DNA of 64,000 nucleotides from Octopus sinensis (Eukaryota): NCBI RefSeq assembly GCF_006345805.1, contig NC_043023.1, positions 16,430,001-16,494,000 of the forward strand, in the 5' to 3' direction. The position numbers and the translations under genes were made by a program. The notes below the pieces were generated by a model. That model saw nothing but the letters and a program-made list of their open reading frames with translations, was not told the DNA's origin and did not search any database. Below, piece by piece: positions 4,853-55,021 of this stretch; positions within the stretch are counted from its first letter, which is position 1; every line of letters starts with the position of its first letter.

Positions 4853-6800
4853 ATGCCAAAAGAAAGAGGAAAATCTGTATATGACTGTGATATCTGTGGT
4901 AAATCATTCTCTGTGAAAGTTAACTTAGCTACTCACAAATGTACTCATACAGGAGAGAAGCCACATCATTGTGATATCTGTGGTAAATCATATTAAAAAT
5001 AAACTTAATCTAACTATTAACAGAAATATTCACACACAGCAAAAACTATATCAGTATGATATCTGTGGTAAATCATTCTCTCAAAACTGTCACATAACTA
5101 AACACAAACTTACTCATACACGAGAGAAACCATATCATTGTGATATCTGCAGTAAATCATTCATTCGCAGAAGTGCTGTAACTGTACATAAACATATTCA
5201 TACAGGTGAGAAACCATATCACTGTGATATCTGTGGTAAATCATTCTCCATGAGAGTTAACTTAGCTAAACACAAACTTACTCATACAGGTGAGAAACCT
5301 TATCAGTGTGATATTTGTGATAAATCATTCGCTCGAAGAAGTGCTGTAACTGTACATAAACGTATTCATACAGGCGATAAACCATATCATTGTGATATCT
5401 GTGGTAAATCATTTTCTAATTGTAGTGGTTTAACATGTCACAGACGTATTCATACAGGAGAGAAACCATATCACTGTGATATCTGTGGTAAATCATTCTC
5501 CATGAAATTTAACTTGGATACACACAAACTTACTCACACTGGGGAGAAACCATATCAGTGTGATATCTGCGGTAAATCATTCTCTCGAAATGGTGCCTTA
5601 GCTAAACACAGACATACTCATACAGGCAAGAAACCTTATCAGTGTGATATCTGTGGTAAATTATTTTCTTTGAAAGGTAACTTAACTACACACAAACTTA
5701 TTCATACAGGTGAGAAACCTTATCAGTGTGATATCTGTGGTAAATCATTCTCTGTGAGAGTTAACTTAGTGACACACAAAGTTATTCATACGGGAGAGAA
5801 ACCTTATCAGTGTGATATCTGTGGTAAATCATTCACTCAAAGAAGTCATGTAACTATACATAAACGTATTCATACAGGAGAGAAACCATATCACTGTGAT
5901 ATCTGTAGTAAATCATTCTCTCGATGTGGTTACTTAGTTACGCACAAACTTACTCATACAGGCGACAAACCTTACCAGTGTGATATCTGCGGTAAATCAT
6001 TCTCTCGAAATGGTGACTTAGCTAAACACAGACATACTCATACTGGCGAGAAACCCCATCATTGTGATATCTGTGGTAAATCATTCTCCTTGCAATGTAA
6101 TTTAAGTAAGCACAGACTTACTCATACAGGGGAGAAACCTTACCAGTGTGATATCTGTGGTAAATCCTTCTCTCGAAATAGTGACTTAGCTACCCACAAA
6201 TTTACTCATACAGGAGAAAAGCCATATTCCTGTGATATCTGTGGTAAATCATTCACTCACAGAAGTGCTGTAACTGTACACAAACGTACTCATACAGGTG
6301 AGAAACCATATCAATGTGATATCTGTGATAAATCATTCTCTCAAAGTGGTGACTTATCCACTCACATGTTTATCCATACAGGTGAGAAACCTTACCACTG
6401 TGATATCTGTGGGAAATCATTCACTCTAAAGGTTGTCTTAACTAAACACAAACGTACTCATACAGGTGAAAAGCCATATCACTGTGATATCTGCAGTAAA
6501 TCATTCATTCAAAAGGGACAATTAAGTAGACACAAATGTATTCCTTCAGGAATGAAATCACATCATTGTGACACCTGTGGTGAATCATTCTCTGTAAAAG
6601 CTAAATTAACTAATCACAAACTTACTCATACAGGTGAAAAGCCATATTATTGTGATATCTGTGGTAAATCATTCACTCAAAAGAACCATTTAAGTAGACA
6701 CAAAGGTATTCATTCAGGGGTGAAGTCACATCATTGTGACACCTGTGGTGAATCATTCTCTGAAATAGATCACTTGACCACTCACAGACTCATTCATTAG
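4853..6800 (+). CDS. C2H2 zinc-finger protein, ~22 finger units; frameshifted near the 5' end (possible pseudogene or truncated product)
   Basis: ATG at 4853 (MPKERGKS…), stop at 4994-4996. An extra base makes the finger 2-3 spacing 85 nt instead of 84. The array continues in ORF 4971-6800 with ~19 intact CxxC…HxxxH fingers and TGEKP linkers. Acceptor TTTCAG at 4424 and AATAAA at 7026 and 7114. Confidence 0.85.
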
Positions 6801-8300: not shown

Positions 8301-8832
8301 GATTTATCATTGTAGCAGTAAATGTCGCATATAAATGAACCCCAAGCCTTTGTCATAACCAAAGCTACACTCTGTCTTAAACTGTTGTTTCTCTCTTATT
8401 TCAGAATATCAGAGGACATTGGCATCAGAGGAAATTTACTGCAGAAGCGTCATCAATATTTATCATATTTTGAAGACGATGTTACACAGAACTGGATATA
8501 AGAACCCTGTTTATGTAAATTAACTGTGAATTTCAGTAAAATATTTCTTCTGAGTGACATTATTGGTGAAATTTCTTGGATTCACTCTGAAATGAGTACA
8601 ACCTAAATTTGGATTCTGAATAAACTTGGATAAATTTACAAAGACATTTGCAACATCTTAAGATATCAGCAAAGCTTATATTTGATAAAAATATGGCAGT
8701 TGTAACATTTGTTAGGAATAAAATATAGAAACAAGAAGAAATGAAATTTCCAGACCATTTTGTTGAAGAAAAAAATTACAGAAAGAGGAATTGTGTGAGA
8801 ATCTTGGAGTTTTGTTAGTTTTAGCTGCAGAG

Positions 8833-9435
8833 ATGCCAAAAGAAAGAGGAAAATCTGTATACGACTGTGATATCTGTGGTAAATCATTCTCCATGAAATT
8901 TAACTTGGATACACACAGACTTACTCACACAGGGGAGAAACCATATCAGTGTGATATCTGCGGTAAAACATTTGCTCGAAGAAGTGCTGTAACTGTACAT
9001 AAACGTATTCATACAGGCGAGAAACCATTTCAGTGTGATATCTGTGGTAAATCATTCTCTCGAGATGGTAACTTAGCTGCTCACAAGGTTATCCATACAG
9101 GAGAGAAACCATTTCAGTGTGATATCTGTGGTAAATCATTCACTCACAAAAGTGGTGTAATTGTACATAAACGTACTCATACAGGTGAAAAGCCATATCA
9201 ATGTGATATCTGTGATAAATCATTCTCTCAAAGTGGTGACTTATCCACTCACAGATTTATCCATACAGGTGAGAAACCATACAACTGTGATATCTGCAGT
9301 AAATCTTTCACTCAAAAGGGACATTTAAGTAGACACAAAGGTATTCATTCAGGGGTGAAGTCACATCATTGTGACACCTGTGGTGAATCATTCTCTGAAA
9401 TAGATCACTTGACCACTCACAGACTCATTCATTAG
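8833..9435 (+). CDS. C2H2 zinc-finger protein, 7 fingers, 200 aa; intact paralog of 4853-6800
   Basis: Open frame from ATG 8833 with 7 complete fingers. 5' flank (from ~8312) and 3' flank (to ~9780) align with 4332-7135. AATAAA at 9661 and 9758. Confidence 0.92.
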   Translation: MPKERGKSVYDCDICGKSFSMKFNLDTHRLTHTGEKPYQCDICGKTFARRSAVTVHKRIHTGEKPFQCDICGKSFSRDGNLAAHKVIHTGEKPFQCDICGKSFTHKSGVIVHKRTHTGEKPYQCDICDKSFSQSGDLSTHRFIHTGEKPYNCDICSKSFTQKGHLSRHKGIHSGVKSHHCDTCGESFSEIDHLTTHRLIH

Positions 9436-13143: not shown

Positions 13144-13521
13144 ATGCCACCAGCACCAGCAACTGCTTCGAAAGGAGCCAAGAAGGCTTCCAAGGCCAAG
13201 ACCTCTCGCCCTGCCGGGGACAAGAAACGTAAGAAGAAGAGGAAGGAAAGTTATTCCATCTACATCTACAAAGTGATGAAGCAAGTCCACCCGGACACTG
13301 GCATCTCCAGCAAAGCTATGTCCATCATGAACAGTTTTGTCAACGATCTGTTCGAAAGAATAGCTTCTGAATCCAGCCGCTTGGCTCACTACAACAAACG
13401 TTCGACCATCAGTAGCCGTGAGGTGCAGACTGCTGTCCGTCTTCTCCTTCCTGGTGAGTTGGCCAAACACGCCGTCTCTGAGGGTACCAAGGCCGTCACC
13501 AAATACACTAGCAGCAAATAA
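13144..13521 (+). CDS. H2B: Histone H2B
   Basis: True ATG at 13144: [10 protein letters not shown]…[12 protein letters not shown]…AVTKYTSSK. Confidence 0.99.
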
Positions 13522-17393: not shown

Positions 17394-18392
<999 letters not shown>

Positions 18393-38092: not shown

Positions 38093-38662
38093 AACTGGCG
38101 AGCCCGTGGAAAAAGATTGGCTGCCTTCTGAACCTATGTTACCAACAATTTGGTGAACCCGTGTAAAGAGAAATAATACCTTTTCATGCTAGATGCTGAT
38201 TCGAATTAAAGAACTGGACCATCTACAGTCGCTAACCCAAAGGAAAATGAATGACAACCTTCGACACCACCATGATGCACCCTCCATCGATCTGCTACAG
38301 GAAGCACTATTCTGCAATGCAATCTACGATGCACTTCGCTGCAATGCAACACAGCCGACGCACAAGGTATTCGCTTACATGCCAAGAAACTAACTGGAAG
38401 AAAATATGGAAGCCCGCACATGCAACCTTTTCAGCACACACACGCTTTTCGTCTCATCCTGATGTACAAACCCTGCATGGTTTGTGAACTTTTGCATGGA
38501 CGTAAGTCTCTCACATAGACTTTGAGCAACTCTTTTTATTTGCATGCACATCTATTCACTTTCAGCTGTAGACAAAGGACACTATTTTCAGCTAAGTTTG
38601 TTATTTTTGCTTATTTTATTATTGTTCTGTTTGCACTGCACACTTTCATTTGTTTACGAGTT

Positions 38663-41119
38663 ACACATATTCCACGATGCACACATTCCACGAAGCACAT
38701 ATTCCACGAAGCACATTCTGCGATGAACATATTCCCTGATGCACATATTCCACAATACATATATTCCATGTTGCACATATTCCATGAAGTGCATTCCACG
38801 ATGCACATATTCCACAAAGCACATTCCCCGATGCACATATTCCACGATGCACATATTCCACGAAGCACATTCTGCGATGCATATATTCCACAAAGCACAT
38901 TCCCCGATGCACATATTCCACGATGCACATATTCCACGAAGCACATTCTGTGATGCATATATTCCACAAAGCACATTCCCCGATGCACATATTCCACGAT
39001 GCACATATTCCACGAAGCACATTCTGCGATGCATATATTCTACGAAGCACATTCTGTGATGCATATATTCCACGAAGCACATTCTGTGATGCATATATTC
39101 CACAAAGCACATTCCCCCGATGCACATATTCCATGAAGCACATTCTGTGATGCATATATTCCACAAAGCACATTCCCCCGATGCACATATTCCATGAAGC
39201 ACATTCTGTGATGCATATATTCCACAAAGCACATTCCCCCGATGCACATATTCCACGAAGCACATTCTGTGATGCATATATTCCACAAAGCACATTCCCC
39301 CGATGCACATATTCCACGAAGTACATTCTGTGATGCATATATTCCACAAAGCACATTCCCCGATGCACATATTCCACGATGCACATATTCCACGAAGCAC
39401 ATTCTGCGATGCATATATTCCACGAAGCACATTCCCCCGATGCACATATTCCACGAAGTACATTCTGTGATGCATATATTCCACAAAGCACATTCCCCGA
39501 TGCACATATTCCACAATACATATATTCCACAAAGCACATTCTGCGATGCATATATTCCACGAAGCACATTCTGTGATGCATATATTCCACGAAGCACATT
39601 CTGTGATGCATATATTCCACAAAGCACATTCCCCCGATGCACATATTCCATGAAGCACATTCTGCGATGCACATATTCCCTGATGCACATATTCCACAAT
39701 ACATATATTCCACAAAGCACATTCTGTGATGCACATATTCCACGAAGTGCATTCCCCGATGCACATATTCCACGAAGCACATTCTGTGATGCATATATTC
39801 CACAAAGCACATTCCACGATGCACATATTCCACGATGCACATATTCCCTGATGCACATATTCCGCAATACATATATTCCACGTTGCACATATTCCACGAA
39901 GCGCATTCCACGATGCACATATTCCACAAAGCACATTCCCTGATGCACATATTCCACAATACATATATTCCACGTTGCACATATTCCGCGATGCACATAT
40001 TCCACAATACATATATTCCACAAAGCACATTCTGTGATGCACATATTCCACGAAGTGCATTTCCCGATGCACATATTCCACGAAGCACATTCTGTGATGC
40101 ATATATTCCACAAAGCACATTCCACGATGCACATATTCCACGATGCACATATTCCCTGATGCACATATTCCGCAATACATATATTCCACGTTGCACATAT
40201 TCCACGAAGCGCATTCCACGACGCACATATTCCACAAAGCACATTCCCTGATGCACATATTCCACAATACATATATTTCACGTTGCACATATTCCGCGAT
40301 GCACATATTCCACAATACATATATTCCACAAAGCACATTCTGTGATGCACATATTCCACGAAGTGCATTCCCCGATGCACATATTCCACGAAGCACATTC
40401 GGTGATGCATATATTCCACAAAGCACATTCCACGATGCACATATTCCACGATGCACATATTCCCTGATGCACATATTCCGCAATACATATATTCCACGTT
40501 GCACATATTCCACGAAGCGCATTCCACGATGCACATATTCCACAAAGCACATTCCCTGAGGCACATATTCTACAATACATATATTCCACGTTGCACATAT
40601 TCCGCGATGCACATATTCCACAATACATATATTCCACAAAGCACATTCTGTGATGCACATATTCCACGAAGTGCATTCCCCGATGCACATATTCCACGAA
40701 GCACATTCTGTGATGCATATATTCCACAAAGCACATTCCACGATGCACATATTCCACGATGCACATATTCCCTGATGCACATATTCCGCAATACATATAT
40801 TCCACGTTGCACATATTCCACGATGCACATATTCCACAAAGCACATTCCCTGATGCACATATTCCACAATACATATATTCCACGTTGCACATATTCCACG
40901 AAGCACATTCTGCGATGCACACATTCTGCAATGCACATCTTCCATGAAGCGCATCCTACGATGCACATATTCCGCGTTGCACACATTCCGCGTTACACAT
41001 ATTCCACCCAGCACATTCCGTGAAGTACATATTCCACGAAGCACATTCCACAAAGCACATTCTGTGTTGCACACATTCTGTGTTGCACACATTCCACGAA
41101 GCACATTCCACGTTGCACA
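38663..41119. repeat. 2.45-kb minisatellite of 14/16-bp variant units with a 308-bp higher-order repeat
   Basis: Units such as GATGCACATATTCCAC, GAAGCACATTCTGT and AAAGCACATTCCCC. Identical blocks start at 39835, 40143, 40451 and 40759. Confidence 0.92.
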
Positions 41120-41251
41120 AATTATGTGACGATTCGTTTCACTAAAGCAGCTAAATCCATTTGCATCTCTTTTTGAATGTTCCTTATTATTATTATTCAT
41201 ATTTTGAATGTACATTTTTTTTGTTCACTTTGAAAATGTTTGTATTGTTGC

Positions 41252-41440
41252 ATAGACACACGCATGCACCTTTCTTCACAGCCTTGCGCATGCATCTGCA
41301 CACTTGATTCATACACACACGCATGCACCTTTCTTCACAGCCTTGCGCATGCATCTGCACACTTGATTCATACACACACGCATGCACCTTTCTTCACAGC
41401 CTTGCGCATGCATCTGCACTCTTGATTCATACACACACAC
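41252..41440. repeat. 3 x 59-bp tandem repeat
   Basis: CGCATGCACC at 41261, 41320 and 41379. Confidence 0.9.
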
Positions 41441-41629
41441 ATGCTATCTCTGCCACATTCATGCTCTACACATGCCTTTCTCTCTAACGGGAAATAAATA
41501 TCTCCTTAAAACTTCATGCATTTTTCCTCTTTTACATCCTGCATTATGCAATTATAACAACAAATTTTTATCGTCAGAACTACTGACGATCGACACATCA
41601 TAATATTGCATGCCTGATCAATTTCTACC

Positions 41630-43790
41630 ATTAAAAACAAATTGGTTTGAAAATTTGATTTTTGGTGGAATTCTCGTTTAAGAACCCCATATGACCCCTC
41701 ATAACCTTTTTTAGCTTTTTGGAATTTAAAAATAAATTCAGCACATTTTCAGTGAAATATTCAAAAATATAGTTTTTTAAATTTTATATTTCAGCTTATG
41801 TAGAGAAACTAAGTTCCTTTTCTTGCTTGTATTTCAATATTTTTATCCCCATAAAAACATTTATGCTATTAAAACAAATTGGTTTGAAAATTTGATTTTT
41901 TGTGGAATTCTTGTTTAAGTACCCCATATGACCCCTCATAACCTTTTTTAACTTTTTGGAATTTAAAAATAAATTCAGCACATTTTCAGTGAAATATTCA
42001 AAAATATAGTTTTTTAATTTTATATTTCAGCTTATGTAGAGAAACTAAGTTCCTTTTCTTGCTTGTATTTCAATATTTTTATCCCCATAAAAACATTTAT
42101 GCTATTAAAACAAATTGGTTTGAAAATTTGATTTTTGGTGGAATTCTGGTTTAAGAACCCCATATGACCCCTCATAACCTTTTCTAACTTTTTGGAATTT
42201 AAAAAAAAATTCAGCACATTTCCAGTGAAATATTCAAAAATATAGTTTTTTAATTTTATATTTCAGCTTATGTAGAGAAACTAAGTTCCTTTTCTTGTTT
42301 GTATTTTCCAGTTGGTTCTAACATGTATTCATCATCATCATCATCATCGTTTAGCGTCCGCTTTCCATGCTAGCATGGGTTGGACGGTTCAACTGGGCTC
42401 TGGGAAGCCAGAAGGCTGCACCAGGCCCAGTCTGATCTGGCAATGTTCTACGGCTGGATGCCCTTCCTAACACCAACCACTCCATGAGTGTAGTGGGTGC
42501 TTTTTACATGTCACCGGCACAGGTGCCAGGGGAGGCTGGCAAACGGCCACGATCGGATGGTGCTTTTTATGTGCCGTCCCCATAAAAACATTTATGCTAT
42601 TAAAAAAAATTGGTTTGAAAATTTGATTTTTTGTGGAATTCTTGTTTAAGAACCCCATATAACCCCTCATAACATTTTCTAACTTTTTGGAATTTAAAAA
42701 AAAATTCAGTACATTTTCAGTGAAATATTCAAAAATATAGTTTTTTAATTTTGTATTTCAGCTTATGTACAGAAACTAAGTTCCTTTTCTTGCTTGTATT
42801 TCAATATTTTTATCCCCATAAAAACATTTATGCTATTAAAACAAATTGGTTTGAAAATTTGATTTTTGGTGGAATTCTCGTTTAAGAACCCCATATGACC
42901 CCTCATAACCTTTTTTAACATTTTGGAATTTAAACATAAATTCAGTACATTTCCAGTGAAATATTCAAAAATATAGTTTTTTAATTCTGTATTTCAGCTT
43001 ATGTACAGAAACTAAGTTCCTTTTCTTGCTTGTATTTCAATATTTTTATCCCCATAAAAGCATTTATGCTATTAAAAGAAATTGGTTTGAAAATTTGATT
43101 TTTGGTGGAATTCTGGTTTAAGAACCCCATATGACCCCTCATAACCTTTTCTAACTTTTTGGAATTTAAAAAAAAATTCAGTACATTTCAAGTGAAATAT
43201 TCAAAAATATAGTTTTTTAATTTTATATTTCAGCTTATGTAGAGAAACTAAGTTCCTTTTCTTGTTTGTATTTCCCAGTTGGTTCTAACATGTATTCATC
43301 ATCATCATCATCGTTTAGCGTCCGCTTTCCATGCTAGCATGGGTTGGACGGTTCAACTGGGGTCTGGGAAGCCAGAAGGCTGCACCAGACCCAGTCTGAT
43401 CTGGCAATGTTTCTATGGCTGGATGCCCTTCCTAATGCCAACCACTCTGTGAGTGTAGTGGGTGCTTTTTACGTGTCACCGGCACAGGTGCCAGACGAGG
43501 CTGGCAAACGATCACAATCAGATGATGCTTTTTATGTGCCATCCCCATAAAAACATTTATGCTATTAAAAAAAATTGGTTTGAAAATTTGATTTTTTGTG
43601 GAATTCTCGTTTAAGAACCCCATATAACCCCTCATAACCTTTTCTAACTTTTTGGAATTTAAAAAAAAATTCAGTACATTTTCAGTAAAATATTCAAAAA
43701 TATAGTTTTTTAATTTTATATTTCAGCTTATGTAGAGAAACTAATTTCCTTTTCTTGCTTGTATTTCCCAGTTGGTTCTAACATGTATGG
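41630..43790. repeat. ~236-bp satellite array with two embedded family D SINEs (~967-bp higher-order unit)
   Basis: CCCCATAAAAAC at 41847 and 42083, among others; SINEs at ~42330-42575 and ~43297-43540 share identical junctions. Confidence 0.88.
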
Positions 43791-45031
43791 TTTTTCAATC
43801 ATCACCTTCACAATCCGAATGATATTTGTAGAAAATTCCACTAAAGAAATATCCATTTTTCCAAAAGTTATGAGGAAATAAAGCCAACTGATGTGAATTT
43901 TCCAAAACTTTTCACTCCACCCTCGGAAAACTTTTTCACATCAAATTCCGATATATCCATTAATATCCATTTGTCAGAAAGTTATGAGTAAAGGAAGGTG
44001 TGTGATTTAAGGGAGATCTGCCTGTTGTTTCTAACACATCCCACAACCACCTTTCTTGTTTCTTCCTCATTCTAACATGTATTCATGTTTTTCAATATTT
44101 TTGTCCCCATAAAAACATTTATGCTATTTAAAAAAACTGGTTTGAAAATTTGATTTTTGGTGGAATTCTCGTTTAAGTACCCCATATAACCCCTCATAAC
44201 CTTTTTACTTTTTAAATTTTAAAAAAATTCAGTACATTTTCAGTAAAATTCTAAAAAATAATATCTTTTATTTTTTTCTTTCAGAAACTAAGTTCTTTTC
44301 GTTGTTTGTATTTCCCAGTTGGTTTTTGAAACTTCCCATTGCATCAAGCCACAACTATAAGGTTTGTCCAAATAGAAGAGATTCTGTTGTAAATATTGGA
44401 TTGTATAGTCATAAAAACACAAGATATATATATGAGGGAGATTTAGCTGTTGTGTCTTGCACATCACACAGACTTTCACAGAATTACATGTAGACATAGA
44501 TTAAAGAACAAACAAAATGTGAAAACTAATTCCTTATTTTAAGCATTAAAAATGTAAATTCAGGACTCTATCAATATCTGTAACTTACTGCAAACTCATT
44601 AGGAGATGTGGAGAGAGAGAGAGACAACCCAAAGCAAAACGACCAAGGAGCCGCCGGTTGCCGAAACAGACACTCCGAGGATTTTCACCAGAGCCCCGTC
44701 TGCCGGGTTGTGGGCCTAATACCACTCGGTGTCAGACCAAACTGCCTTGGGTGGCCCTACCAGGAACCAAAGTTCCCGACAGCATAGCTCTGACACTACC
44801 CGTTGCCAGTGTCCCCACCACGGTGAGGAGGGGATGGACTTCGGGGACGCATGATTTTTGAATGCAACATGAGTTATGGTGCTTGAGTGCATTGAACTAG
44901 AATGAGGGTTGTCATTCAAAAGTCCAAGAAAAAAACAAAGTTTGTAAATGCGAGGAAATACCATGGAGTTTCAGGGAACCTGACATGATCTGTAACTGTT
45001 GGATTTTCAGAAAAACTATACAAGAAGGTGC

Positions 45032-45425: not shown

Positions 45426-45734
45426 GAAGAATGTTCACAGTTAGAAGTTTCAAATGATTTAGAATTTTCTTCAGAAAACGTTTATTTTGACGTGAAAATG
45501 CTGTAGCAAAAAGTGTTTGTGCAAGTTCAAACTGCACTTGTCTCTACTGTACAGCGTTCTGTAGTATTCGAAATAGTTAAGAATAAGATCTCCAATGCCA
45601 CAGGCTCGACCACAAATCTATTAAAGAGTGACTGATGATATTGTGACTGTTTGTTTTTCTCAGCCTGACCAGCCTCGGACCCTGGGCTATAAACTTTGTT
45701 ATTTTGCAGCTTTTCAAAATTATTTTTTCAGATC

Positions 45735-45780
45735 ATGGCTAAATGGATCTTGTTCTGCTATTTGTTTGTAACATTTGACC
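45735..45780 (+). CDS. Exon 1 (signal peptide) of a novel Ig-like type I membrane protein
   Basis: Acceptor TTTTTTCAG|ATC then ATG GCT; encodes MAKWILFCYLFVTFD + c; donor |GTAAGT, phase 1. Confidence 0.75.
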
Positions 45781-45967
45781 GTAAGTTTTATTTATATTTT
45801 ATTTAATTTCTTTCCATAACTTATTTTTGTTAAGGCAAACTTACTCAGGTGCACAGGGGTCTGGAATGGGGTCACTCACATAAGGAGGATTTTCTTTGTT
45901 TTGGTAGGGATTTTCCCAATTTTGTTTTCATCACAGCTTTAGAAATGATGCATTTTATGGAAGAAAA

Positions 45968-46552
45968 TTTGGTCCAGTGGTTAGGGCAGCGGACTCGCGG
46001 TTTCGATTCCCAGACCGGGCGTTGTGAGTGTTTATTGAGCGAAAACACCTAAAGCTCCACGAGGCTCCGGCAGGGGATGGTGGTGATCCCTGCTGTACTC
46101 TTTCACCACAACTTTCTCTCACTCTTACTTCCTGTTTCTGTTGTACCTGTATTTCAAAGGGCCGGCCTTGTCACTCTCTGTGTCACGCTGAATATCCCCA
46201 AGAACTACGTTAAGGGTACACGTGTCTGTGGAGTGCTCAGCCACTTACACGTTTATTGAGCGAAAACACCTAAAAGCTCCACGAGGCTCCGGCAGGGGAT
46301 GGTGGTGATCCCTGCTGTACTCTTTCACCACAACTTTCTCTCACTCTTACTTCCTGTTTCTGTTGTACCTGTATTTCAAAGGGCCGGCCTTGTCACTCTC
46401 TGTGTCACGCTGAATATCCCCGAGAACTACGTTAAGGGTACACGTGTCTGTGGAGTGCTCAGCCACTTACACGTTAATTTCACGAGCAGGCTGTTCCGTT
46501 GATTCGGATCAACCGGAACCCTCATCGTCGTAACCGACGGAGTGCTTCCATC
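45968..46552 (+). mobile_element. Family B SINE with an internal ~220-bp tandem duplication
   Basis: TTTATTGAGCGAAAACACC at ~46031 and ~46253. Confidence 0.8.
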
Positions 46553-46557
46553 CATCC

Positions 46558-46712
46558 ACCGTCTTATTTCTGGAGTGCAGTCACCATCTCGATTTCTTTT
46601 GGAGCCAAGGAAGATGAAATCATCAACCACTTCAATCTCTTCATTATCGATCTTGATGCTGGTGTTTGTTGTGGCTGCTGTTGACATGATCTTCGTTTTC
46701 TTAACCACAACC
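46558..46712 (-). pseudogene. RTE (BovB-like) reverse transcriptase fragment
   Basis: KKTKIMS…IKIDNEEIEVVDDFIFLGSK…DGDCTPEIRR matches the post-RT region of RTE LINEs. Confidence 0.75.
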
Positions 46713-46926
46713 CGTCACTATTTAATAAATTCTCAGATGTCTTTACTTTAACAGCTTCGTTTCCCTCTGTGTCTGCTGTAGTGTTTCCTGGTTTATCGAA
46801 ATACGTGGGAATTTCATTTATGTATCCAATATTTCCTGGGGAGAACCCAAACATTTTACACTCCTTCAGAACAAATTTTTTCAGTTTCTGAGCAATATGA
46901 GTTTTTTTTTTGGCAGTCGCAGTCAC
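46713..46926 (-). pseudogene. pogo/Tigger-type DDE transposase fragment
   Basis: THIAQKL…IGYINEIPTYFDKPGNTT…G…VKVKT resembles the pogo IGNMDETPxxFDMPxxxTxxxxGxKxV motif. Confidence 0.6.
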
Positions 46927-47460
46927 TTATCAATACATGTCAGCCTCAACATCCAAAGCCCTCATGTTCCACCATTTTGTCCTGCACCTTTCAGGGTCCA
47001 CCTCTTCCACAGATTGCCTCCGCAGTTAGAGATCAGCACTTCTTTACATAGCAGTCCTTGTCCGTTCATTTTTAGAATGACATTGTAAGACAGGTGTAAA
47101 AGGATGACCCATTACCAGTTTAAACATGAAACAGGTAGAATCTTTGTGCCAGGTATGGCTACTTTAACTCGTTAGCAATTAGTTTATTCCGTTTAATGTA
47201 ATGCTCCTTTAGACTTGGTTTTTGAATTAATCATTCGTTATCTTGTAGTTTTGACATTTTGATGATGTGATTGTTTATTTTTAGACTGACATTGTAGGGT
47301 AGGTGTGAGGGGCTGGACCCAGCCACTTAGAACATAAAACAGATATGGCTGCTTTAATCCTTTAGCAATCAAATTACTGTGAAATGTAATGTTCATTTAT
47401 TCACATTGTTTTGAATTATTTCATCTTAAAATCAAAAAATTTTGTTTTCATCTTTTACAG

Positions 47461-47499
47461 ATTTGTCAAGGGCACAAAAGTATAATATCACCCAAAGTG
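47461..47499 (+). CDS. Exon 2, 39-nt micro-exon (end of signal peptide plus first strand)
   Basis: CATCTTTTACAG| … |GTAAAT; phase 1-1; encodes (H)LSRAQKYNITQS(G). Confidence 0.72.
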
Positions 47500-47689
47500 G
47501 TAAATATATTCTTCTTTCCTACATTTGACCCTCCAACATGGAGTATAGGCCACTCATAATTGAATTCCATGTTGCATAATTTTTCACCTCTGTACTTATA
47601 CTCTGCCATGAATGTCCCCCTTTCTCTAGTTCCTTTTGTGTTGATCTACGCCACTAGTTCTTAGGCCTACCTCTCTTTCTATATCCAAG

Positions 47690-47947
47690 TTAAGCTAAGT
47701 TAAGGTAAGTTAAGTTAATTTTTGGGCTCAAAAAGCAAAAAAGCAAGGCCATGTAGGGGGACATGGAGTTATGTACAGGGTGGTGTTCATGCAAAGAGTT
47801 CAGGCCATTTGTGGTCAAGGGAGACTTTGAACCAAGCAGTCGTCAGCATCTTCACTATCTCGTCCGGCAGCTTATTCCACGGATCCGCAACCCGGACGGA
47901 GAAGGCCCCTCTTCTTCGATTGAGATGAAATTGTCGCAGATAGAGTG
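47690..47947 (-). mobile_element. CR1/L2-type LINE 3' end
   Basis: LYLRQFHLNRRRGAFSVRVADPWNKLPDEIV…FKVSLDHKW followed by a (TAACT)n-like tail. Confidence 0.75.
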
Positions 47948-48114
47948 CATTCCACTCTGCGCTTTGCTCTACAATGATACAAAGAGTGGCGGTTTGATCT
48001 CCACATGAACGGTTCTTCCTAAATCCAGCTTCTTCTTTACTGCTGTCCTCATCATCTCTAAAAGTATCCTGTTAAAATCTTTTCCGGGAGCTGATAATAG
48101 CCTAATCCCTCTAT

Positions 48115-48600
48115 AAGATGCTGAGTACTCATCAGCCAATTATAGAGGTTTTCCATTAATAAAAAAGTTATCAAATCAAGTGGCAACATTATAGAGAAGG
48201 TAGATATATAGACAAAGATGTGGATTTAAATTTTAAGAACATATGAGGTACTAAGATTTGGTTGTTCCACTACATCATACGTTCTTAAAATTAAAATCCA
48301 CATCTTTGTCTATATATCTACCTTCTCTATAATGTTGCCACGTGATATGAACATTTTTGTATTAACAGAAAACCTCTATAATTGGCTGATGAGTGTTCAG
48401 CATTTTAAAACTGTTGTAATACTTACAACATTTAATAAAATGATGTAGTACGAAACGATCGTACCAAATTACCGGAGTCATTCTTATTGCTTATTTTCAT
48501 TATAATCACCCCACGGATTTCTATGGATAACACCATACAAAATTCTGGTGCATCTAAATTAAGTACCATATTCATTTGAATCTAAATTTTTGCTGAACTT
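48115..48600. mobile_element. Penelope-like foldback carrying a hammerhead ribozyme
   Basis: ~135-bp inverted arms (48115-48248 and 48272-48407); 3' sequence matches 10752-10915. Confidence 0.7.
48379..48471 (+). ncRNA. Type I hammerhead ribozyme motif
   Basis: TAATTGG-CTGATGA(48386)-long helix II-C-GAAAC(48452)-GATC-GTA(48461-63)-CCAAATTA; complete catalytic core with a palindromic helix III. Confidence 0.68.
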
Positions 48601-48816
48601 ATATATATATATATTTGCCAACATAATGTGGCAGTCTTGGTTAGGACGAATGATACTGTAAATTTAGTCTTAGGAAACATCATCTATCTGCATACCAATG
48701 GTCTCTGGGTTATTTCCCTTCATCAGCACAGAATAACTGCTCGGCTACAGATGACTCCACTAAACTCTTGTCCAAAATATATACTTTCCAAAGTGACACA
48801 AAGTCTCTGATCTAAC

Positions 48817-49197
48817 AAATAGAAAATTATTTCTAAATCTCTGAACAAAAGACATTGAGTAACAGTACTCTAGGGTAGAGATTATTTGCCAACATAATGT
48901 GGCAGTCCTGGTTAGGACGATTGTTACTGTTCCTTAGCCCTAGGAAATATCGTCTCCAGCAGGCTATATGACACACTAGCTGCATCCTTATATTTTCAAA
49001 CAAGGGAGTTTAGCATCCCATAGGACATAGATAGCGTGTCATATACCCAGCTGGAGGCAGTGTTTCCTAGGGCTAGATAACAGTAACAATCATCCTAACT
49101 AGGACTGCCATATTATGCTGGCAAATAATCCTTACTCTCGAGTAATGTTACTGAATGTTTCTCATTCAGGGACTTAGAAATAATAATTTTCTATTTA
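48817..49197. mobile_element. Foldback MITE with ~160-bp arms
   Basis: 48817-48978 is inverted relative to 49035-49197; partial copy at 48614-48700. Confidence 0.8.
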
Positions 49198-49514
49198 CAT
49201 ATATATATATATACATATATATAAACAATGGGCTTCTTTCAGTTTCCATCTATCAAATCCACTCACAAGGCTTTGAAACACACAAGTTTGTATGTATATA
49301 TATACACACACAAGTGTGTATGTATATATATACACACACATATACATACACACACATATACATACAATGGGCTTCTTTCAATTTCCATCTAGAAAATCCA
49401 CTCACAAGGCTGATGCTGTAGTAGAAGACACTTTCCCGAGGTGCTCTGCAGTGGGACTGAACCCAGGACCATGTGATTTGGAAGCAAACTTCTTAACTGA
49501 TTTCGTTATTTCAG

Positions 49515-49763
49515 GAATTGCTGTGCTCAATGGATGTCTCACCCTTACGATAACAATACCTGATATGAAACGACCGGTGGTTTGGAAGTGCCGCAATTAT
49601 AAATATGAATGTGACAAGACATGCGCTGATGGCCCTGACTATAAAGTGACACAGGATGGAGATACCTCCACGCTTTGGATCAAAAAAGTAACTGAGAAAT
49701 GTTTGACTTGGAGATTTGATGATGACAACCTTAATGCTGCAGACATTGATTTGAAGATAAAGA
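49515..49763 (+). CDS. Exon 3, atypical Ig-like domain 1
   Basis: TTATTTCAG| … |GTAAGG; 249 nt, phase 1-1, open frame; …LTLTITIP…VVWKC…STLWIKKVT…TWRF…IDLKIK. Confidence 0.8.
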
Positions 49764-50342
49764 GTAAGGAAATGATTTATAATAATTTCTTTATTGACCA
49801 CAGAGGGCTAACACAAAGGAAAACATTCGGGAGGGTCTAGTGTGGGTTTTAGCATGTAAAAAGTCATACAAAGAATAAAAGAAATTCAAAGTAACATCCC
49901 TGATAGTTTGGGGACTTTGAAGGGCCACACGTAAAGAAAGCCCACAAAATCCAAGGTCTCCCTGGCCACCAGGGTTGATGCCCTCTCCCAGTCTTTCCTC
50001 TCCAATATACAGGTACACTCTGAGAGAAGGCCCATTCACTCAGGTAATGCTCACCCCTCTCACCCACCTTTCAACAAACTGCTTGGAAGCCAGCACTTAC
50101 CTCTCCACCCTGATTTTCCTCTTCAAGTAAAACCTGAAAAAGTTTATTAGGGTTTTGACAAAATGGCAGTTGCTGGTCTTCAGCCCTTTCAGACATGTCC
50201 ACTGTATGATCCCCTTTGCCATGGGCCCCGAGCAGATAAAAACTGGTTGCCCTTCCTGGTTGAGGGAAAGTAGAGGGGCCATCTTCACAATGGACTTCCA
50301 AAATTTTCCAAAAATCAAAATTTTTGTTTTCATCTTTTACAG

Positions 50343-50381
50343 GTTTCTCAAGTGCAAACATTTACAAGATCACCCAAAGTG
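50343..50381 (+). CDS. Exon 4, 39-nt micro-exon copy 2
   Basis: CATCTTTTACAG| … |GTAAAT; phase 1-1; encodes (S)FSSANIYKITQS(G). Confidence 0.72.
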
Positions 50382-50565
50382 GTAAATATATTCTTGTTTC
50401 CTACATTTGACCCTCCAACGTGGAGTATAGGCCACTCATAATTGAATTCCATGTTGCATAATATTTCGCCTCTGTACTTATACTCTGCCATGAATGTCCT
50501 CCTTTCTCTAGTTCCTTTTGTGTTGATCTACGCCACGGAGTTCTTAGGCCTACCTTTCTTTTTAC

Positions 50566-51690
50566 ATCCAACCGGTTTCCACTTTAAACACTTTTTGCTA
50601 CATTTAGTGTGTCTTTTCTAATTGTGCTACCAATCCACTTCCTCCTTTTCTTAAATATTTGCTCCCTAATCAAAACTTGATTTGTTCATTGCCATAGCTC
50701 CATATTGCTTATGTGTTTGGGCCATCTAATTTTAAGTATACTACGCAAGCATCTGTTGATGAATGGTTTTATTTGCTTATTTGATTTAACTGTTGTTTGC
50801 CATGTCTCAGCCCCATACAATAACACCGCTTTTACGTTCGTGTTAAAAATTTTAACTTAAGTTAAGATAATTTTTGGGCTCAAAAAGCAAAAAAGCAAGG
50901 CCATGTAGGGGGACTTGGAGTTATGTACAGGGTGGTGTTCATGCAAAGAGTTCAGGCCATTTGTGGACAAGGGAGACTTTGAACCGAGCGGTCGTCGGCA
51001 TCTTCATTATCTCGTCCGGCAGCTTATTCCACGGAACCGCAACCCGGATGGAGAAGGGCCCTCTCCTTCGATTGAGATGAAATCGTCACAGATAGAGCTT
51101 TTCGGAGTGACCCCGCAGCCGACGCTCTGGAGCAGGAGTGAAGAACATCTCTTCCGAGAGGTTACTTTGTTGTTTATTGAAATTACACTTGCGCTCCATA
51201 CTTTCTTTAACAGGTGAAAAACGGTCCTTGCCTTACTTATTCTCACCTTAATATCTTCGTCGGTGCCACCTGAAAACGTTATCTTACTACCTGAATACAT
51301 AAACTTGGCTACATCCTCTTGTTCACCAGTTTCTAGTTTAATACATTCATTGTTTACTTCATTAACGTGCATAATTTTTGATTTGAGGTTGACTTTCAAT
51401 CCTAGTTTGGCAGCTATTGCTTCTAATTTTGACATTTTATTTTGCATTTGGCTATGTTTGTGAAAGCAGCCCCCTATCATCTGCAAAGTCGAGATCTTCT
51501 ACAGCTTCCACATCCGTCCATTCAATGCTTGTTTGGCTTTCAATCGTAGTTTCCTTCATAATCCAATCTATAACTAATAGAAATAAAAAGGGTGTAAGGA
51601 TACAGCCCTGTCGAACTCCTGTTTTTACTTCAAATTTATCTGTAGCTCCGTTTCCATGCAAGACTCGGCATGACATTCCTTGGTATGTTG
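50566..51690 (-). pseudogene. RTE-clade LINE RT relic, interrupted by a CR1 3' end (50852-51160)
   Basis: GVRQGCILTPFLFLLVIDWIM…DLDFADD, then …IKVRISKARTVF…, and after the CR1 insert …IFNTNVKAVLLYGAETW…. Confidence 0.8.
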
Positions 51691-51712
51691 GTCTTATATA
51701 TATATATGTATA

Positions 51713-51970
51713 TCATCATCATCATCATCATCATCGTTTAACGTCCGCTTTCCGCGCTAGCACGGGTTGGACGGTTTGACCGGGTCTGGGAAGCCAGGGG
51801 CCGCACCAGGCTCCAGTCTGATCTGGCAGAGTTTCTACGGCTGGATGCCCTTCCTAACGCCAACCACTCCGTGAGTGGATTGGGTGCTTTTTACGTGACA
51901 CCTGCACAGGGGCCGGAGGGTCCGGCATCGGTCACGATCGGTTCGAGCATTTTAACGTGTCAGCGGCACG
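51713..51970 (-). mobile_element. Family D SINE-like element
   Basis: (CAT)n CGTTTAACGTCCGC…GGATGCCCTTCCTAACGCC. Confidence 0.75.
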
Positions 51971-51983
51971 GGGGCAACGAGGT

Positions 51984-52047
51984 CCGGGGTACTTTGGGGA
52001 TCGGGGTACTTTGGGGATCCAGGGTACTTTGGGGTCCGGGGTACTTA
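51984..52047. repeat. 4 x 17-18-bp GGGGTACTTTGGGGATC-type repeat
   Basis: Visible directly in the sequence. Confidence 0.85.
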
Positions 52048-53045
52048 GAATGGGTAGGGGGTATGTGGAATTGCTGCAGAAAGCAGCCCGGGTCTTTGTA
52101 GTCACAGCATTTATCGTCACTGAGTAACGTAATTAGGTAGAGGAAAGAAATACAGATATTCTAGAGTTGAGTTGGGGAGGGGGGGTCCAGTTGAGGCGGG
52201 TAATATAGGGGAGCAACCAGTGGGGAAGGTTGGGGTAAGGAGGAACGATGGCAGGAAGGGGTTGGTGAAGGTTCCTAAGAAATAAAAACGTAGGATATTG
52301 AAATAAAAACGTAGGATATTACGAGGCGGGAGGGTACTAAAGGGGGTGGTCGGAATGAGGCAGTGTCAGGAGGAAGCGTAAGATCGGTGGGCAGTTGATG
52401 AGCTATGGCGCTAGCAGCTTCTCTTTTCACAGTGAAAGCATATGAGGAGAAGGGGTAGTGGGTGGAGGGGGAGGGAGTAGGGCGTACCCGGTGTAGATGA
52501 GTAAGGCGTATCCGGTGTAGATGGTGAGAACAGGGTATACTGGTATTGGTGGTGGGGGGTGAGAACAGTGTTCACCGGTATTGGTGGTGGTGGTGGTGAG
52601 AACAGAGTTCACCGGTATTGGGGGTGGGGGGCGGGCGCATGGCGGAAAGATGGGAAGAGATGGGATTACGGCTTGAGGTAGCCTAAGGTTAAATTTTGTA
52701 GAGAGAGAGATAGGAAAGATAAATCAAGTTATGGCGAAGGCTTGAAAGTAGCCTAAAAGGTTAAATTTTTTCGTAACAATGTATGAATAAACGTAGTAAC
52801 AACGAATAAAAATAGTAAGATAAATTTTTAAGAACTTGCTGCGGGCATCGATCGAGAGTTGAAATTGAAGAAGAAAGTAAGTTGAATTGGGAATTTAAAT
52901 TGCAGATATATACACACACACACATACACACATACACACATACATATAAATATATATATACACACACACATACATACAATAGGCTTCTTTTAGTTTCCAT
53001 CTATCAAATCCACTCACAAGTCTTTGAAATACACAAGTGTGTATG

Positions 53046-53077
<32 letters not shown>

Positions 53078-53269
53078 TATACATACACATGCACACATAC
53101 ACACACACACACATACATAGAATGGGCTTCTTTCAATTTCCATCTTGAAAATCCACTCACAAGGCTGATGCTGTAGTAGAAGACACTTTCCTGAGGTGCT
53201 GTGTAGTGGGACTGAACCCAGGACCATGTGATTTGGAAGCAAACTTCTTAACTGATTTCTTTATTTCAG

Positions 53270-53518
53270 GAATTGCTGTGCTCAATAGAAACCTCACCCT
53301 TTCGATAACAATACCGAACATGAAACGACCGGTGGTTTGGAAGTGCCAGAATTATAAATATGAATGTGACAAGACATGCGCTGATGGCCCTGACTATAAA
53401 GTGACACAGGATGGAGATACCTCCAAGCTTTGGATCAAAAAAGTAACTGAGAAATGTTCGACTTGGAAATTTGATGATGACAACCTTAATATTGGAAGAA
53501 TTGATTTGGAGATAAAGA
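53270..53518 (+). CDS. Exon 5, atypical Ig-like domain 2
   Basis: TTATTTCAG| … |GTAAGG; 249 nt, phase 1-1; 71/83 aa identical to exon 3. Confidence 0.8.
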
Positions 53519-54149
53519 GTAAGGAAATGATTTATAATAATTTCTTTATTGACCACAGAGGGCTAACACAAAGGAAAACATTCGGGAGGGTCCAGCGTGG
53601 GTTTTAGCATGTAAAAAGTCATACAAAGAATAAAAGAAAGTCAAAGTAACATCCCTGATAGTTTGGGGACTTTGAAGGGCCACACGTAAAGAAAGCCCAC
53701 AAAATCCAATGTCTCCCTGACCACCAGGGTGGATGCCCTCTCCCGGTCTTTCCTCTCCAATATACAGGTACACTCTGAGAGAAGGCCCATTCACTCAGGT
53801 AATGCTCACCTCTCTCACCCACCTTTCAACAAACTGCTTGGAAGCCAGCACTTACCTCTCCACCCTGATTTTCCTCTTCAAGTGAAACCTGAAAAAGTTT
53901 ATTAGGGTTTTGACAAAATGGCAGTTGCTGGTCTTCAGCCCTTTCAGACATGTCCACTATATGATCCCTTTTGCCATGGGCCCCGAGCAGATAAAAACTG
54001 GTTGCCCTTCCTGGTTGAAGGAAAGTAGAGGGGCCATCTTCACAATGGACTCAGCTGATAGTTGTATATAATAAGGGTTTCTTTTATTTGCCACAAGGGC
54101 AAAGGATGAGGGGGTCAATACCAAGGTGTGTGTGTGTGGAGGTTATATT

Positions 54150-54690
54150 ATCTTTCTCTTTTTACTTGTTTCAGTCATTTGACTGTGGCCATGCTGGAGC
54201 ACCGCCTTTAGTCGAGCAAATCAACCCCAGGATTTATTCTTTGTACTTATTCTATGAGTTCTCTTTTGCCGAACCACTAAGTAACGGGGATGTAGACAAA
54301 CCAGCAACGGTTGTCAAGCGATGTTTGGAGGACAAACAGACACACAAACACACACATATATACGACGGGCTTCTTTCAGTTTCCATCTACCAAATTGGTT
54401 CTCTTGCTGAACCGCTAAGTAACGGGGACGTAGACACCCCAGCATCGGTTGTCAAGCAATGCTAGGGGGACAAACAGACACACAAACACACACATATATA
54501 CGACGGGCTTCTTTCAGTTTCCATCTACCAAATTGGTTCTCCTGCTGAACCGCTAAGTAACGGGAATGTAGACACCCCAGCATCGGTTGTCAAGCAATGC
54601 TAGGGGGACAAACAGACACACAAACACACACATATATACGACGGGCTTCTTTCAGTTTCCGTCTACCAAATCCACTCACAAGGCTTTATA
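54150..54690 (-). mobile_element. Family A SINE with ~3 tandem internal repeats
   Basis: The AACC(A/G)CTAAGTAACGGG…TTTCAGTTTCC block recurs three times. Confidence 0.75.
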
Positions 54691-54890
54691 TAACCAAGCT
54701 CATGTGTGCAACATAGTGTTACTGGAAATTTTGATGGGGACTTTTCCTTTAGATCACTTTGAAATGGAATTTGTATAACAGAAATGAAAGTATTTTTTAA
54801 TAGTTTAGTATGAAAATGGTCAAACTTGGGAGATATTACTATTTTTTATTAAAAACAAAAGGTATATATTTTATTGTTTGTCAATTGCAG

Positions 54891-55021
54891 ATCCGAAACC
54901 TAAACCTCATGGACTAACTACACTTGAGATTGTCGGAATCATTTTTGGCTCACTGATCCTTGCTGCAATCCTTGTTGGACTCGCTTATTTCGGCTACAAA
55001 TATTTTAAAAATAACCATTAG
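54891..55021 (+). CDS. Exon 6, stalk + transmembrane helix + short tail
   Basis: TTGTCAATTGCAG|; phase 1; (N)PKPKPHGLTTLEIVGIIFGSLILAAILVGLAYFGYKYFKNNH, TAG at 55019-55021; AATAAA at 55189. Confidence 0.8.

Follow-up and report, generated by a model that had tools for sequence, protein, structure and literature searches.

A divergent immunoglobulin-like single-pass membrane protein encoded at LOC115225116 of Octopus sinensis, a member of an octopod family

The DNA analysed here, referred to as the window, is a stretch of 64,000 nucleotides (nt) of the Octopus sinensis genome (assembly GCF_006345805.1, contig NC_043023.1, positions 16,430,001 to 16,494,000). A preliminary description, made from its sequence, had proposed that positions 45,735 to 55,021 hold a hidden six-exon gene for a novel immunoglobulin (Ig)-like type I membrane receptor. 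We find at this place a genuine, intact protein-coding gene, already annotated by NCBI as LOC115225116 with several predicted isoforms, whose 250-residue product is a type I single-pass membrane glycoprotein with a cleavable signal peptide, two divergent I-set-like Ig domains, a short Pro/Lys stalk, a single transmembrane helix and a tail of seven residues in the cytoplasm. Below we describe the gene, its product and its relatives, and then ask what such a protein might do. All coordinates are those of the window.

The gene and its exons

When the window was read and the proposed intervals were joined by script, the six exons (46, 39, 249, 39, 249 and 131 nt) gave one frame of 753 nt and 250 amino acids, closed by a TAG stop at 55019-55021. 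Every internal boundary has AG before and GT after the exon, and each junction is in phase 1. Lengths, splice sites, phase and frame thus agree exactly with the preliminary description, and all the motifs quoted there can be located in the spliced product (MAKWILFCYLFVTFDHLSRA, NITQS, LTLTI, VVWKC, ECDKTC, STLWIKKVTEKC, PKPKP and the tail KYFKNNH). This pattern is far beyond chance, because the product is 100% identical to a RefSeq protein and because the exon plan is repeated in paralogous loci.

The gene is, however, neither hidden nor novel. A search of 5.8 billion protein clusters with the 250-residue product returned 20 proteins, all from Octopus; isoform X6 of LOC115225116 (P0002, 304 residues) holds all 250 residues at 100% identity, and isoform X2 (P0001, 345 residues) spans 94% of them. 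These RefSeq models, and also P0006, a shortened copy annotated as LOC115230624, are named 'uncharacterized protein' throughout. Nor is six the full number of exons, as the 54 additional N-terminal residues of X6 map by tblastn to two further exons upstream in the window, and an exhaustive junction search showed that joining 38420-38501, 44285-44361 and 45732-45780 rebuilds X6 exactly, with GT/AG at all sites. The gene therefore has at least the following exons in the window:

38420-38501, plus strand: upstream 5' exon of RefSeq isoform X6, with a GT donor at 38502 (tblastn of the X6 N-terminus and exact junction search)
44285-44361, plus strand: second upstream exon, with AG acceptor and GT donor (tblastn and junction search)
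45732-45780, plus strand: signal-peptide exon, with ATG at 45735, encoding MAKWILFCYLFVTFD and the first base of the next codon
47461-47499, plus strand: 39-nt mini-exon a, phase 1-1, for the last part of the signal peptide, which is its c-region (H)LSRA, and for strand A of domain 1, QKYNITQSG
49515-49763, plus strand: 249-nt exon for Ig-like domain 1, phase 1-1, covering strands A'/B to G
50343-50381, plus strand: 39-nt mini-exon b, a copy of mini-exon a, for the linker FSSA between the domains and strand A of domain 2
53270-53518, plus strand: 249-nt exon, phase 1-1, encoding Ig-like domain 2 and differing from the domain 1 exon at 20 nt
54891-55021, plus strand: terminal coding exon, encoding the PKPKP stalk, the transmembrane helix (about residues 218-243), KYFKNNH and the TAG stop

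The acceptor AG at 45730-45731 opens the third of these exons at 45732, and the exon that had been taken as the first, from 45735, is therefore internal. The methionine of MAKW is likelier to be the true start of translation than the upstream methionine of X6, since the hydrophobic leader then sits at the N-terminus, since X8, P0006 and the paralogues begin at the equivalent methionine, and since the upstream frame would bury the leader. Exon 38420-38501 is probably 5' untranslated region (5'UTR), as its open reading frame (ORF) would bury the signal peptide. Partial copies of the sequence of exon 44285-44361, which encodes ETKF(F/L)..FVFPSWF, occur at 36792, 42277, 43244 and 43737 besides 44281, and the same peptide is read into the paralogue models P0008 and P0014; this repeated sequence may be a promoter or 5'UTR module of the family.

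An alternative reading of the locus is that the 250-residue product is not the main one, and that the window holds the 3' part of a longer locus driven by an upstream promoter outside it, with a third domain (as in X2) or with splicing of domain cassettes (as in X8). RefSeq does list these two isoforms, which join exons of an upstream unit outside the window, comprising a different signal exon and a third domain; X8 in addition links both mini-exons and so skips domain 1. Their first exons (MDILKFFCC..., MAKWILFCLLFVTFV...) are absent from the window, where a search for these exons or for a third domain found neither, and tblastn of the domain against the whole window matched only the domain exons at 49515-49763 and 53270-53518. 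The phase 1-1 coding exons would keep any combination in frame, and the neighbouring locus LOC115225115 has at least 12 numbered isoforms with one to four domains. However, the upstream exons would have to be more than 45 kb distant, past zinc-finger genes and a cluster of histone H2A, H2B and H3 genes, a layout that chimeric computational models typically show where paralogues stand in tandem arrays. Gene models of the region are moreover error-prone, as indicated by O. vulgaris models in which histone H2B is fused to a paralogue (P0004, P0020), evidently a gene-model error. The MAKW exon, in contrast, is preceded by upstream exons of its own and puts the signal peptide at the N-terminus, where it belongs. 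On balance we consider it rather unlikely that a longer product is the main one.

As regards the shortened copy, P0006 lies on an unplaced 50.8-kb contig, VCDQ01005272.1, that is 98% identical to the window from 34.5 kb onward. A single T has been lost from the domain 2 exon of this contig (L001 17530-17670; GGTTTGG to GGTTGG), which results in the frameshifted tail of RefSeq LOC115230624. P0006 is therefore a redundant copy that carries an error, and the contig is probably either a haplotig or the result of misassembly.

Topology and membrane anchor

Signal peptides and glycosylphosphatidylinositol (GPI) signals were judged by rule of thumb. The leader of the 250-residue product has Lys3, a hydrophobic core from W4 to F14 and then DHLSRA, with S-R-A at positions -3 to -1; the alanine at -1 is kept in the leaders of paralogues (YLSSA, YFTRA, CLTSA). 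Apart from the leader, there is a single strong hydrophobic segment: Kyte-Doolittle windows of 19 residues that exceed 1.6 start only at residues 214-226, peaking at 2.75 for residues 221-239, and the segment is followed by the basic seven-residue tail KYFKNNH. The type I orientation that had been proposed is thus borne out. Two N-glycosylation sequons are present, at N24 and N132. In the AlphaFold2 model of the full-length protein, residues 1-21 have a predicted local distance difference test score (pLDDT) below 50, two beta-sandwiches of like fold follow (block pLDDT mostly 76-95) on either side of a flexible linker at 111-115, and a helix spans residues 218-249.

Within the transmembrane segment there is no charged residue at mid-membrane such as activating immunoreceptors use to recruit adaptors, which argues against pairing of the DAP12 or FcR-gamma type. 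The helix (LEIVGIIFGSLILAAILVGLA(Y/F)FGYKYF) is near-identical in LOC115225116 and LOC115225115, though their ectodomains differ, and it contains small-xxx-small motifs; because of these two features, lateral association via the helix is possible. No alternative terminal exon of GPI type was found in the window (none at E < 1).

The domains are Ig-like but have lost the canonical disulfide

To examine the domains, thirty of them were cut from the family and aligned (alignment A1, by which domain positions are numbered below). W37, C46 and C50 are invariant in A1, and among 84 distinct domain sequences W37 is present in 76, six of the remainder having gaps at this position. With A1 as input, AlphaFold2 predicts domain 1 as a seven-strand beta-sandwich (pLDDT 89.1, predicted template modelling score 0.82), with strands B at 22-27, C at 35-39, C' at 42-46, D at 56-61, E at 64-69, F at 78-82 and G at 89-92, plus short A and A' strands; the predicted strand order is that of the I-set. 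A Foldseek search of the PDB with this model gave Ig domains for all of the top 50 matches, with probability 1.00 and TM-scores mostly of 0.5-0.67, the top matches including antibody VL, CD8a, shark NAR V, obscurin Ig32 and titin I81. The best superposition is on obscurin Ig32 (root-mean-square deviation 2.4 Å over 80 columns), and in the viral library of Foldseek the matches are Ig-like proteins of herpesvirus, poxvirus and adenovirus. The structural check that had been suggested for the preliminary description, AlphaFold followed by Foldseek, therefore gives a beta-sandwich of Ig type.

Sequence comparison points in the same direction. The A1 profile retrieved 55 proteins from 1.84 billion representatives and reaches vertebrate obscurin (E 2.6e-25, 15 repeats) and a CD22-like protein. 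When A1 was compared by hhalign with canonical Ig domains taken from the profile matches (96.5% probability, E 8e-10), W37 fell on the core Trp, STLWIKKV on the E strand and Ile26 on the B-strand Cys, the alignment ending before the F strand. The core Trp and the E-strand pattern L-x-I-x-x-V are retained, and all four domain-coding exons are in phase 1-1. Taken together, both the predicted fold and the sequence support the two domains as divergent Ig-like domains of I-set type.

Other searches gave less. A Pfam scan of the 250-residue protein found no family at the curated cut-off. I-set scored 17.1 bits against a cut-off of 23.7, the four-domain paralogue P0021 scored 23.6 against the same 23.7, and a relative from the abalone Haliotis (see below) scored 56.8. 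The best Pfam score (E 3.7e-4; 20.4 against 27 bits) went to the bacterial Sgo0707_N2, also the sole precomputed Pfam label of P0001, which we reject as a chance or generic beta-sandwich match. A search of PDB sequences with the family profile gave only chance-level matches to titin (E 0.46) and CD2 (E 1.4).

The canonical disulfide between strands B and F is lost in these domains, as had been proposed: the B-strand position is Ile26, and the F strand reads LTW(R/K)F, with neither YxC nor DxGxYxC. A B-F disulfide is typical of Ig domains but not obligatory, being missing from CD2 domain 1 and from some titin domains. Four other cysteines had been described as conserved, and this holds both in A1 and in a table of the cysteines of 66 distinct complete domains. 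C46 is present in 66 of the 66 and C50 in 64, while C39 and C76 are strongly associated (both in 33 domains, neither in 28, and one without the other in five; Fisher p = 5e-13). C82 and C87 also co-occur (p = 9e-10), nearly always in domains without C39, and the domains with C82-C87 in place of C39-C76 are mostly membrane-proximal. In both domains of the window gene the core Trp, all four conserved cysteines and the remaining near-invariant positions are kept; an unpaired Cys, at residue 36, is found only in domain 1.

In the predicted structure C39 is the last residue of strand C and C76 stands just ahead of strand F, and since strands C and F are antiparallel neighbours in one sheet, a link between them is geometrically reasonable. 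We infer that the B-F disulfide has been replaced by a C39-C76 bridge from strand C to strand F, together with a small C' loop closed by C46-C50. In the numbering of the 250-residue product the bridges would be Cys54-Cys91 and Cys61-Cys65 in domain 1 and Cys150-Cys187 and Cys157-Cys161 in domain 2, which would leave Cys36 free.

A recent duplication within the gene

The two domain-coding parts of the gene lie within two units of a direct repeat:

47428-50309, plus strand: tandem duplication unit 1, containing mini-exon a, an intron, the exon of domain 1 and some of the intron that follows (direct-repeat families D1, D4 and D5; intron identity 89-97%)
50310-54060, plus strand: tandem duplication unit 2, containing mini-exon b, an intron enlarged by inserted repeats (around 51.1-52.9 kb), the exon of domain 2 and 540 nt of the intron behind it

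The direct repeats pair 47428-47654 with 50310-50536, 47700-47945 with 50852-51097, and 49323-49622 with 53078-53377. The 540 nt that follow each domain exon are 96.7% identical, and the 160 nt that follow each mini-exon 94%. This similarity outside the coding sequence shows that domains 1 and 2 go back to a recent intragenic tandem duplication of a segment made up of the 39-nt mini-exon, the intron and the 249-nt exon. Since the signal peptide finishes in mini-exon a, which also holds the A strand, the duplicated mini-exon provides the linker FSSA-NIYKITQSG between the domains; similar leader-like linkers (SLTKAE..., NLSRAQ...) are present in three- and four-domain paralogues. The intron of unit 2 is about 870 nt longer than that of unit 1 and contains, in the interval 51000-52900, a minus-strand ORF of 159 residues (51007-51486) and a G-rich block at 51.7-52.7 kb. 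The extra sequence is likely a transposable-element insertion that followed the duplication.

The domain exons are more diverged than the introns, with 20 of 249 nt differing, and the changes amount to 12 replacement codons against one silent. By the Nei-Gojobori method the ratio of replacement to silent rates (dN/dS) between domains 1 and 2 is 1.14, which is not significant (binomial p = 0.62), whereas it is about 2.5 between the window domains and paralogue P0082 and about 0.4 between the window domains and a distant octopus mRNA; the values above 1 depend on few silent changes (Sd 2-4, and 2-3 for P0082). Furthermore, the differences between the domains are clustered (NAAD versus NIGR, GC versus RN), and each variant is also met with in paralogues. 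Gene conversion is therefore at least as likely as positive selection. We therefore reject positive selection between domains 1 and 2, given the p value and the confounding by likely gene conversion.

An octopod family with several kinds of anchor

At least 17 O. sinensis loci belong to the family on the basis of the names retrieved, all of them 'uncharacterized protein'. Eleven are reported on the 21.3-Mb chromosome record CM016885.1, where three were placed, at 10.98, 12.27 and 19.01 Mb; in all three the domain exons measure about 249 nt and are flanked by the splice sequences seen in the window gene. The gene span of one member, P0013, exceeds 100 kb. All the strong profile matches that were looked up are octopod (O. 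sinensis, O. vulgaris, O. bimaculoides and Argonauta hians), the next match being LOC124119024 of the abalone Haliotis rufescens, and a second, word-indexed homologue search with the domain alignment yielded five proteins and added little. Among the clear relatives found so far the family thus appears to be restricted to octopods, in keeping with the lineage-specific origin first suggested for the protein.

Members carry one to four Ig-like domains and differ in the way in which they are tethered. The first type of anchor, in LOC115225116 and LOC115225115, consists of a PKP stalk, a transmembrane helix and a tail of seven to nine residues; the second consists of other transmembrane segments with short, unrelated tails; and the third, in P0082, P0016 and P0025, is a GPI-signal-like end, GAQGTSSLRTKSILVIGMIIAVII(YTF), read by eye. 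No family tail contains a recognisable signalling motif. At least one paralogue is expressed: P0025 is an uninterrupted ORF of 138 residues on a contig of 1,067 nt that was assembled from SRR3401912, an octopus metatranscriptome run (PMC11662614), and such an ORF in a metatranscriptome contig indicates a spliced mRNA.

Several further members depart from this picture. P0018, P0019, P0028, P0042 and P0043, from other chromosomes and from Argonauta hians, have one domain that lacks C39 and C76 and has W-x-F-S-x-W instead; a Cys-rich domain of a different kind (KPKIE...C.Y.V.A.CSLP) comes next, and then at least one transmembrane segment. The occurrence of this sub-family elsewhere indicates that the domain is older than the array on CM016885.1. 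Frameshifted domain translations occur in other annotated loci, namely in the N-terminal part of P0016 and in P0006. In P0036 a zinc-finger protein is joined to an Ig-like domain, probably through another chimeric model.

Literature searches on octopus Ig superfamily proteins, on octopus-specific membrane families and with the LOC and UniProt identifiers found no description of this family, and nothing was found on runs SRR11869385 and SRR11869391. What is new here is that the domains are assigned to a fold, that their altered disulfides and their history of duplication are described, and that an octopod-restricted family is defined; the gene itself was already annotated.

Surroundings of the gene in the window

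The remaining features that we noted in the window are as follows:

4971-6800, plus strand: intronless C2H2 zinc-finger ORF of 609 residues with about 20 fingers
8791-9435, plus strand: intronless C2H2 zinc-finger ORF of 214 residues
12497-12874, minus strand; 13144-13521, plus strand; 17982-18392, plus strand: histone cluster (H2A, H2B and H3 ORFs, named by sequence), about 27-33 kb upstream of the gene
38664-41123: minisatellite of 2.5 kb with a 16/30-nt unit, CACATATTCCACGATG..., a higher-order period of 308 and strongly negative GC skew
41251-41444 and 41634-43274: further arrays (period 236)
46030-46479: tandem pair of 222 nt in intron 1
49193-49443 and 52944-53250: interspersed repeats directly 5' of both domain exons, with a part rich in (CA)n/(TA)n and a core 'gggcttctttcagtttcc(a/g)tct...ccactcacaagg'
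54262-54675: three tandem 138-nt copies of the same gggcttctttcagtttcc core repeat, before the last exon

Intronless C2H2 ORFs of this kind are typical of the zinc-finger expansion of cephalopods. The minisatellite lies in the first intron of X6 and is open in several frames, with ORFs of up to 853 residues. An ARAGORN scan of the window for heads of tRNA-derived short interspersed elements found no tRNA-like gene.

What might the protein do?

The best overall explanation, and one that we regard as likely, is that this real, annotated gene encodes a surface-displayed, Ig-like binding module. The Ig-like ectodomain would contact a ligand or counter-receptor on another cell, on a microbe or in the matrix. 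As the tail has only seven residues, any signalling would need a membrane partner: seven cytoplasmic residues could not signal by themselves, so either a laterally associated partner would do so or the role would be purely one of adhesion or recognition. The fast change seen among recent paralogues would also fit recognition better than a housekeeping role.

Some considerations weigh against this explanation. Function is here deduced from architecture alone, and the calls of signal peptides and GPI signals follow the rule of thumb mentioned above. The Pfam I-set score of the protein is below the cut-off. The disulfide pairing is deduced from cysteines that occur together and from strands that lie side by side, rather than from measured coordinates. 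Finally, the dN/dS values above 1 suffer from the scarcity of silent changes, and gene conversion could account for the differences between domains without positive selection.

Two more specific proposals can be made, to each of which we assign a low probability. Under the first, the octopod family would be a diversified recognition system, in immunity or in the distinction of self from non-self. Cassettes of a phase 1-1 mini-exon and domain exon would be duplicated, gene-converted between paralogues and alternatively spliced, giving surface receptors built on an Ig domain with a C-F bridge instead of the canonical disulfide; in cephalopods, such a system would correspond to the FREPs of snails or the Dscam of insects. 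The isoforms with one to four domains, and X8 with its skipping of domain 1, fit this idea, which we nonetheless hold to be improbable.

Under the second, the protein would be an auxiliary subunit, the obligatory partner of a multi-pass transporter or channel, bound through its transmembrane helix and controlling trafficking or gating. Basigin, embigin and neuroplastin are partners of this sort for MCT and PMCA transporters, as are the Ig-type beta subunits for sodium channels. Basigin-2 has an equal architecture (two Ig domains, one transmembrane helix, very short tail), and Foldseek aligns the full-length model over about 240-250 columns with basigin-2 in MCT1 complexes (7ckr_B, E 3.6e-7; 6lyy_B; 6lz0_B). 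The near-unchanged sequence of the helix between LOC115225116 and LOC115225115, with its small-xxx-small motifs, is also what such a partnership would favour. However, the TM-scores to basigin are about 0.3 and single-chain antibodies score equally, so the match reflects the presence of two Ig domains and not basigin specifically. The unrelated transmembrane segments or GPI-signal-like ends of other members fit poorly with a partnership mediated by the helix, and the acidic residue that basigin has in mid-membrane is missing here. Moreover, subunits of this type are usually conserved and present in few copies, whereas this family is lineage-specific and fast-evolving. An auxiliary role accordingly strikes us as doubtful.

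That the gene is a decaying or non-functional duplicate in the paralogue array, perhaps still transcribed, we consider very improbable: a dN/dS of about 1 between the domains, the frameshifted translations in P0016 and P0006 and the odd unpaired Cys 36 of domain 1 could be taken that way, but the frame is intact over six exons with canonical splice sites throughout, both domains retain the conserved cysteines, the core Trp and the near-invariant positions, and the frameshift of P0006 is the loss of a single T in a redundant unplaced contig outside the window.

Cephalopod genomes hold many 'octopus-specific' genes without an assigned fold, and we know of no characterised repertoire of surface recognition receptors in cephalopods beyond the protocadherin expansion. 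Some 17 or more 'uncharacterized' O. sinensis loci with almost no Pfam annotation can be reclassified as divergent Ig superfamily surface proteins, whose disulfide arrangement is unusual and whose exons are organised like cassettes. Alignment A1 provides a profile able to annotate them, and work on immunity, tissue recognition or neural wiring in the octopus has a concrete candidate in this family. No general principle is changed, since lineage-specific expansions of the Ig superfamily are common in animals.

Comparison with known systems

In domain structure, the closest comparison is with the I-set domains of obscurin and titin (PF07679). These share with the octopus domain a sandwich of seven to nine strands, the strand order, the Trp of strand C, the L-x-I-x-x-V pattern and phase 1-1 exons. 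Unlike them, the octopus domain lacks the B-F disulfide, YxC and DxGxYxC, having C39-C76 and C46-x3-C50 instead, and it is split over exons of 39 and 249 nt.

Whole proteins of similar plan are found in vertebrates. CD2, CD58 and CD48 have two Ig-like domains and a short stalk, a distal domain that lacks the canonical disulfide, both transmembrane and GPI-anchored forms and a binding function in the ectodomain. The octopus family shares the short-stalked two-domain plan and the mixture of transmembrane and GPI-like anchors. However, there is no significant sequence relation (the match to CD2 domain 2 is at chance level), the two octopus domains are both of one type where the CD2 family pairs a V-set with a C2-set domain, and the lineages are unrelated. 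Basigin, embigin and neuroplastin resemble the octopus protein in their two Ig domains, conserved single transmembrane helix and short tail. Basigin itself has canonical disulfides and a mid-membrane Glu and is widely conserved across animals; the octopus family differs in being lineage-restricted, in the GPI-like ends of some members and in the low TM-score already noted, and neither the Pfam scan nor the searches of PDB sequences and with the profile brought up any basigin.

Among invertebrates, the Dpr/DIP and Beat families of Drosophila and the molluscan FREPs, all of the Ig superfamily, are likewise present as many paralogues with one to three Ig domains, tethered by GPI or by a transmembrane helix that lacks signalling motifs. 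They act in recognition between cells or of pathogens and keep the canonical disulfide. Dpr2 Ig1-Ig2 (6eg1_C) is among the Foldseek matches of the full-length model, but there is no orthology and, as described, the octopus family lacks the canonical disulfide.

The nearest relative found outside cephalopods is Haliotis rufescens LOC124119024 (E 4e-16, five stretches), an uncharacterized protein with five repeats and a transmembrane segment. In contrast to the octopus protein it passes the Pfam I-set threshold, and it lacks the C39/C76 pair. It nevertheless shares the C-x3-C loop (TCNPSC in the abalone, ECDRTC in the octopus), the E strand STL(T/W)I and an F strand of the form (T)W-x-(I/F)-x-D-x-N.

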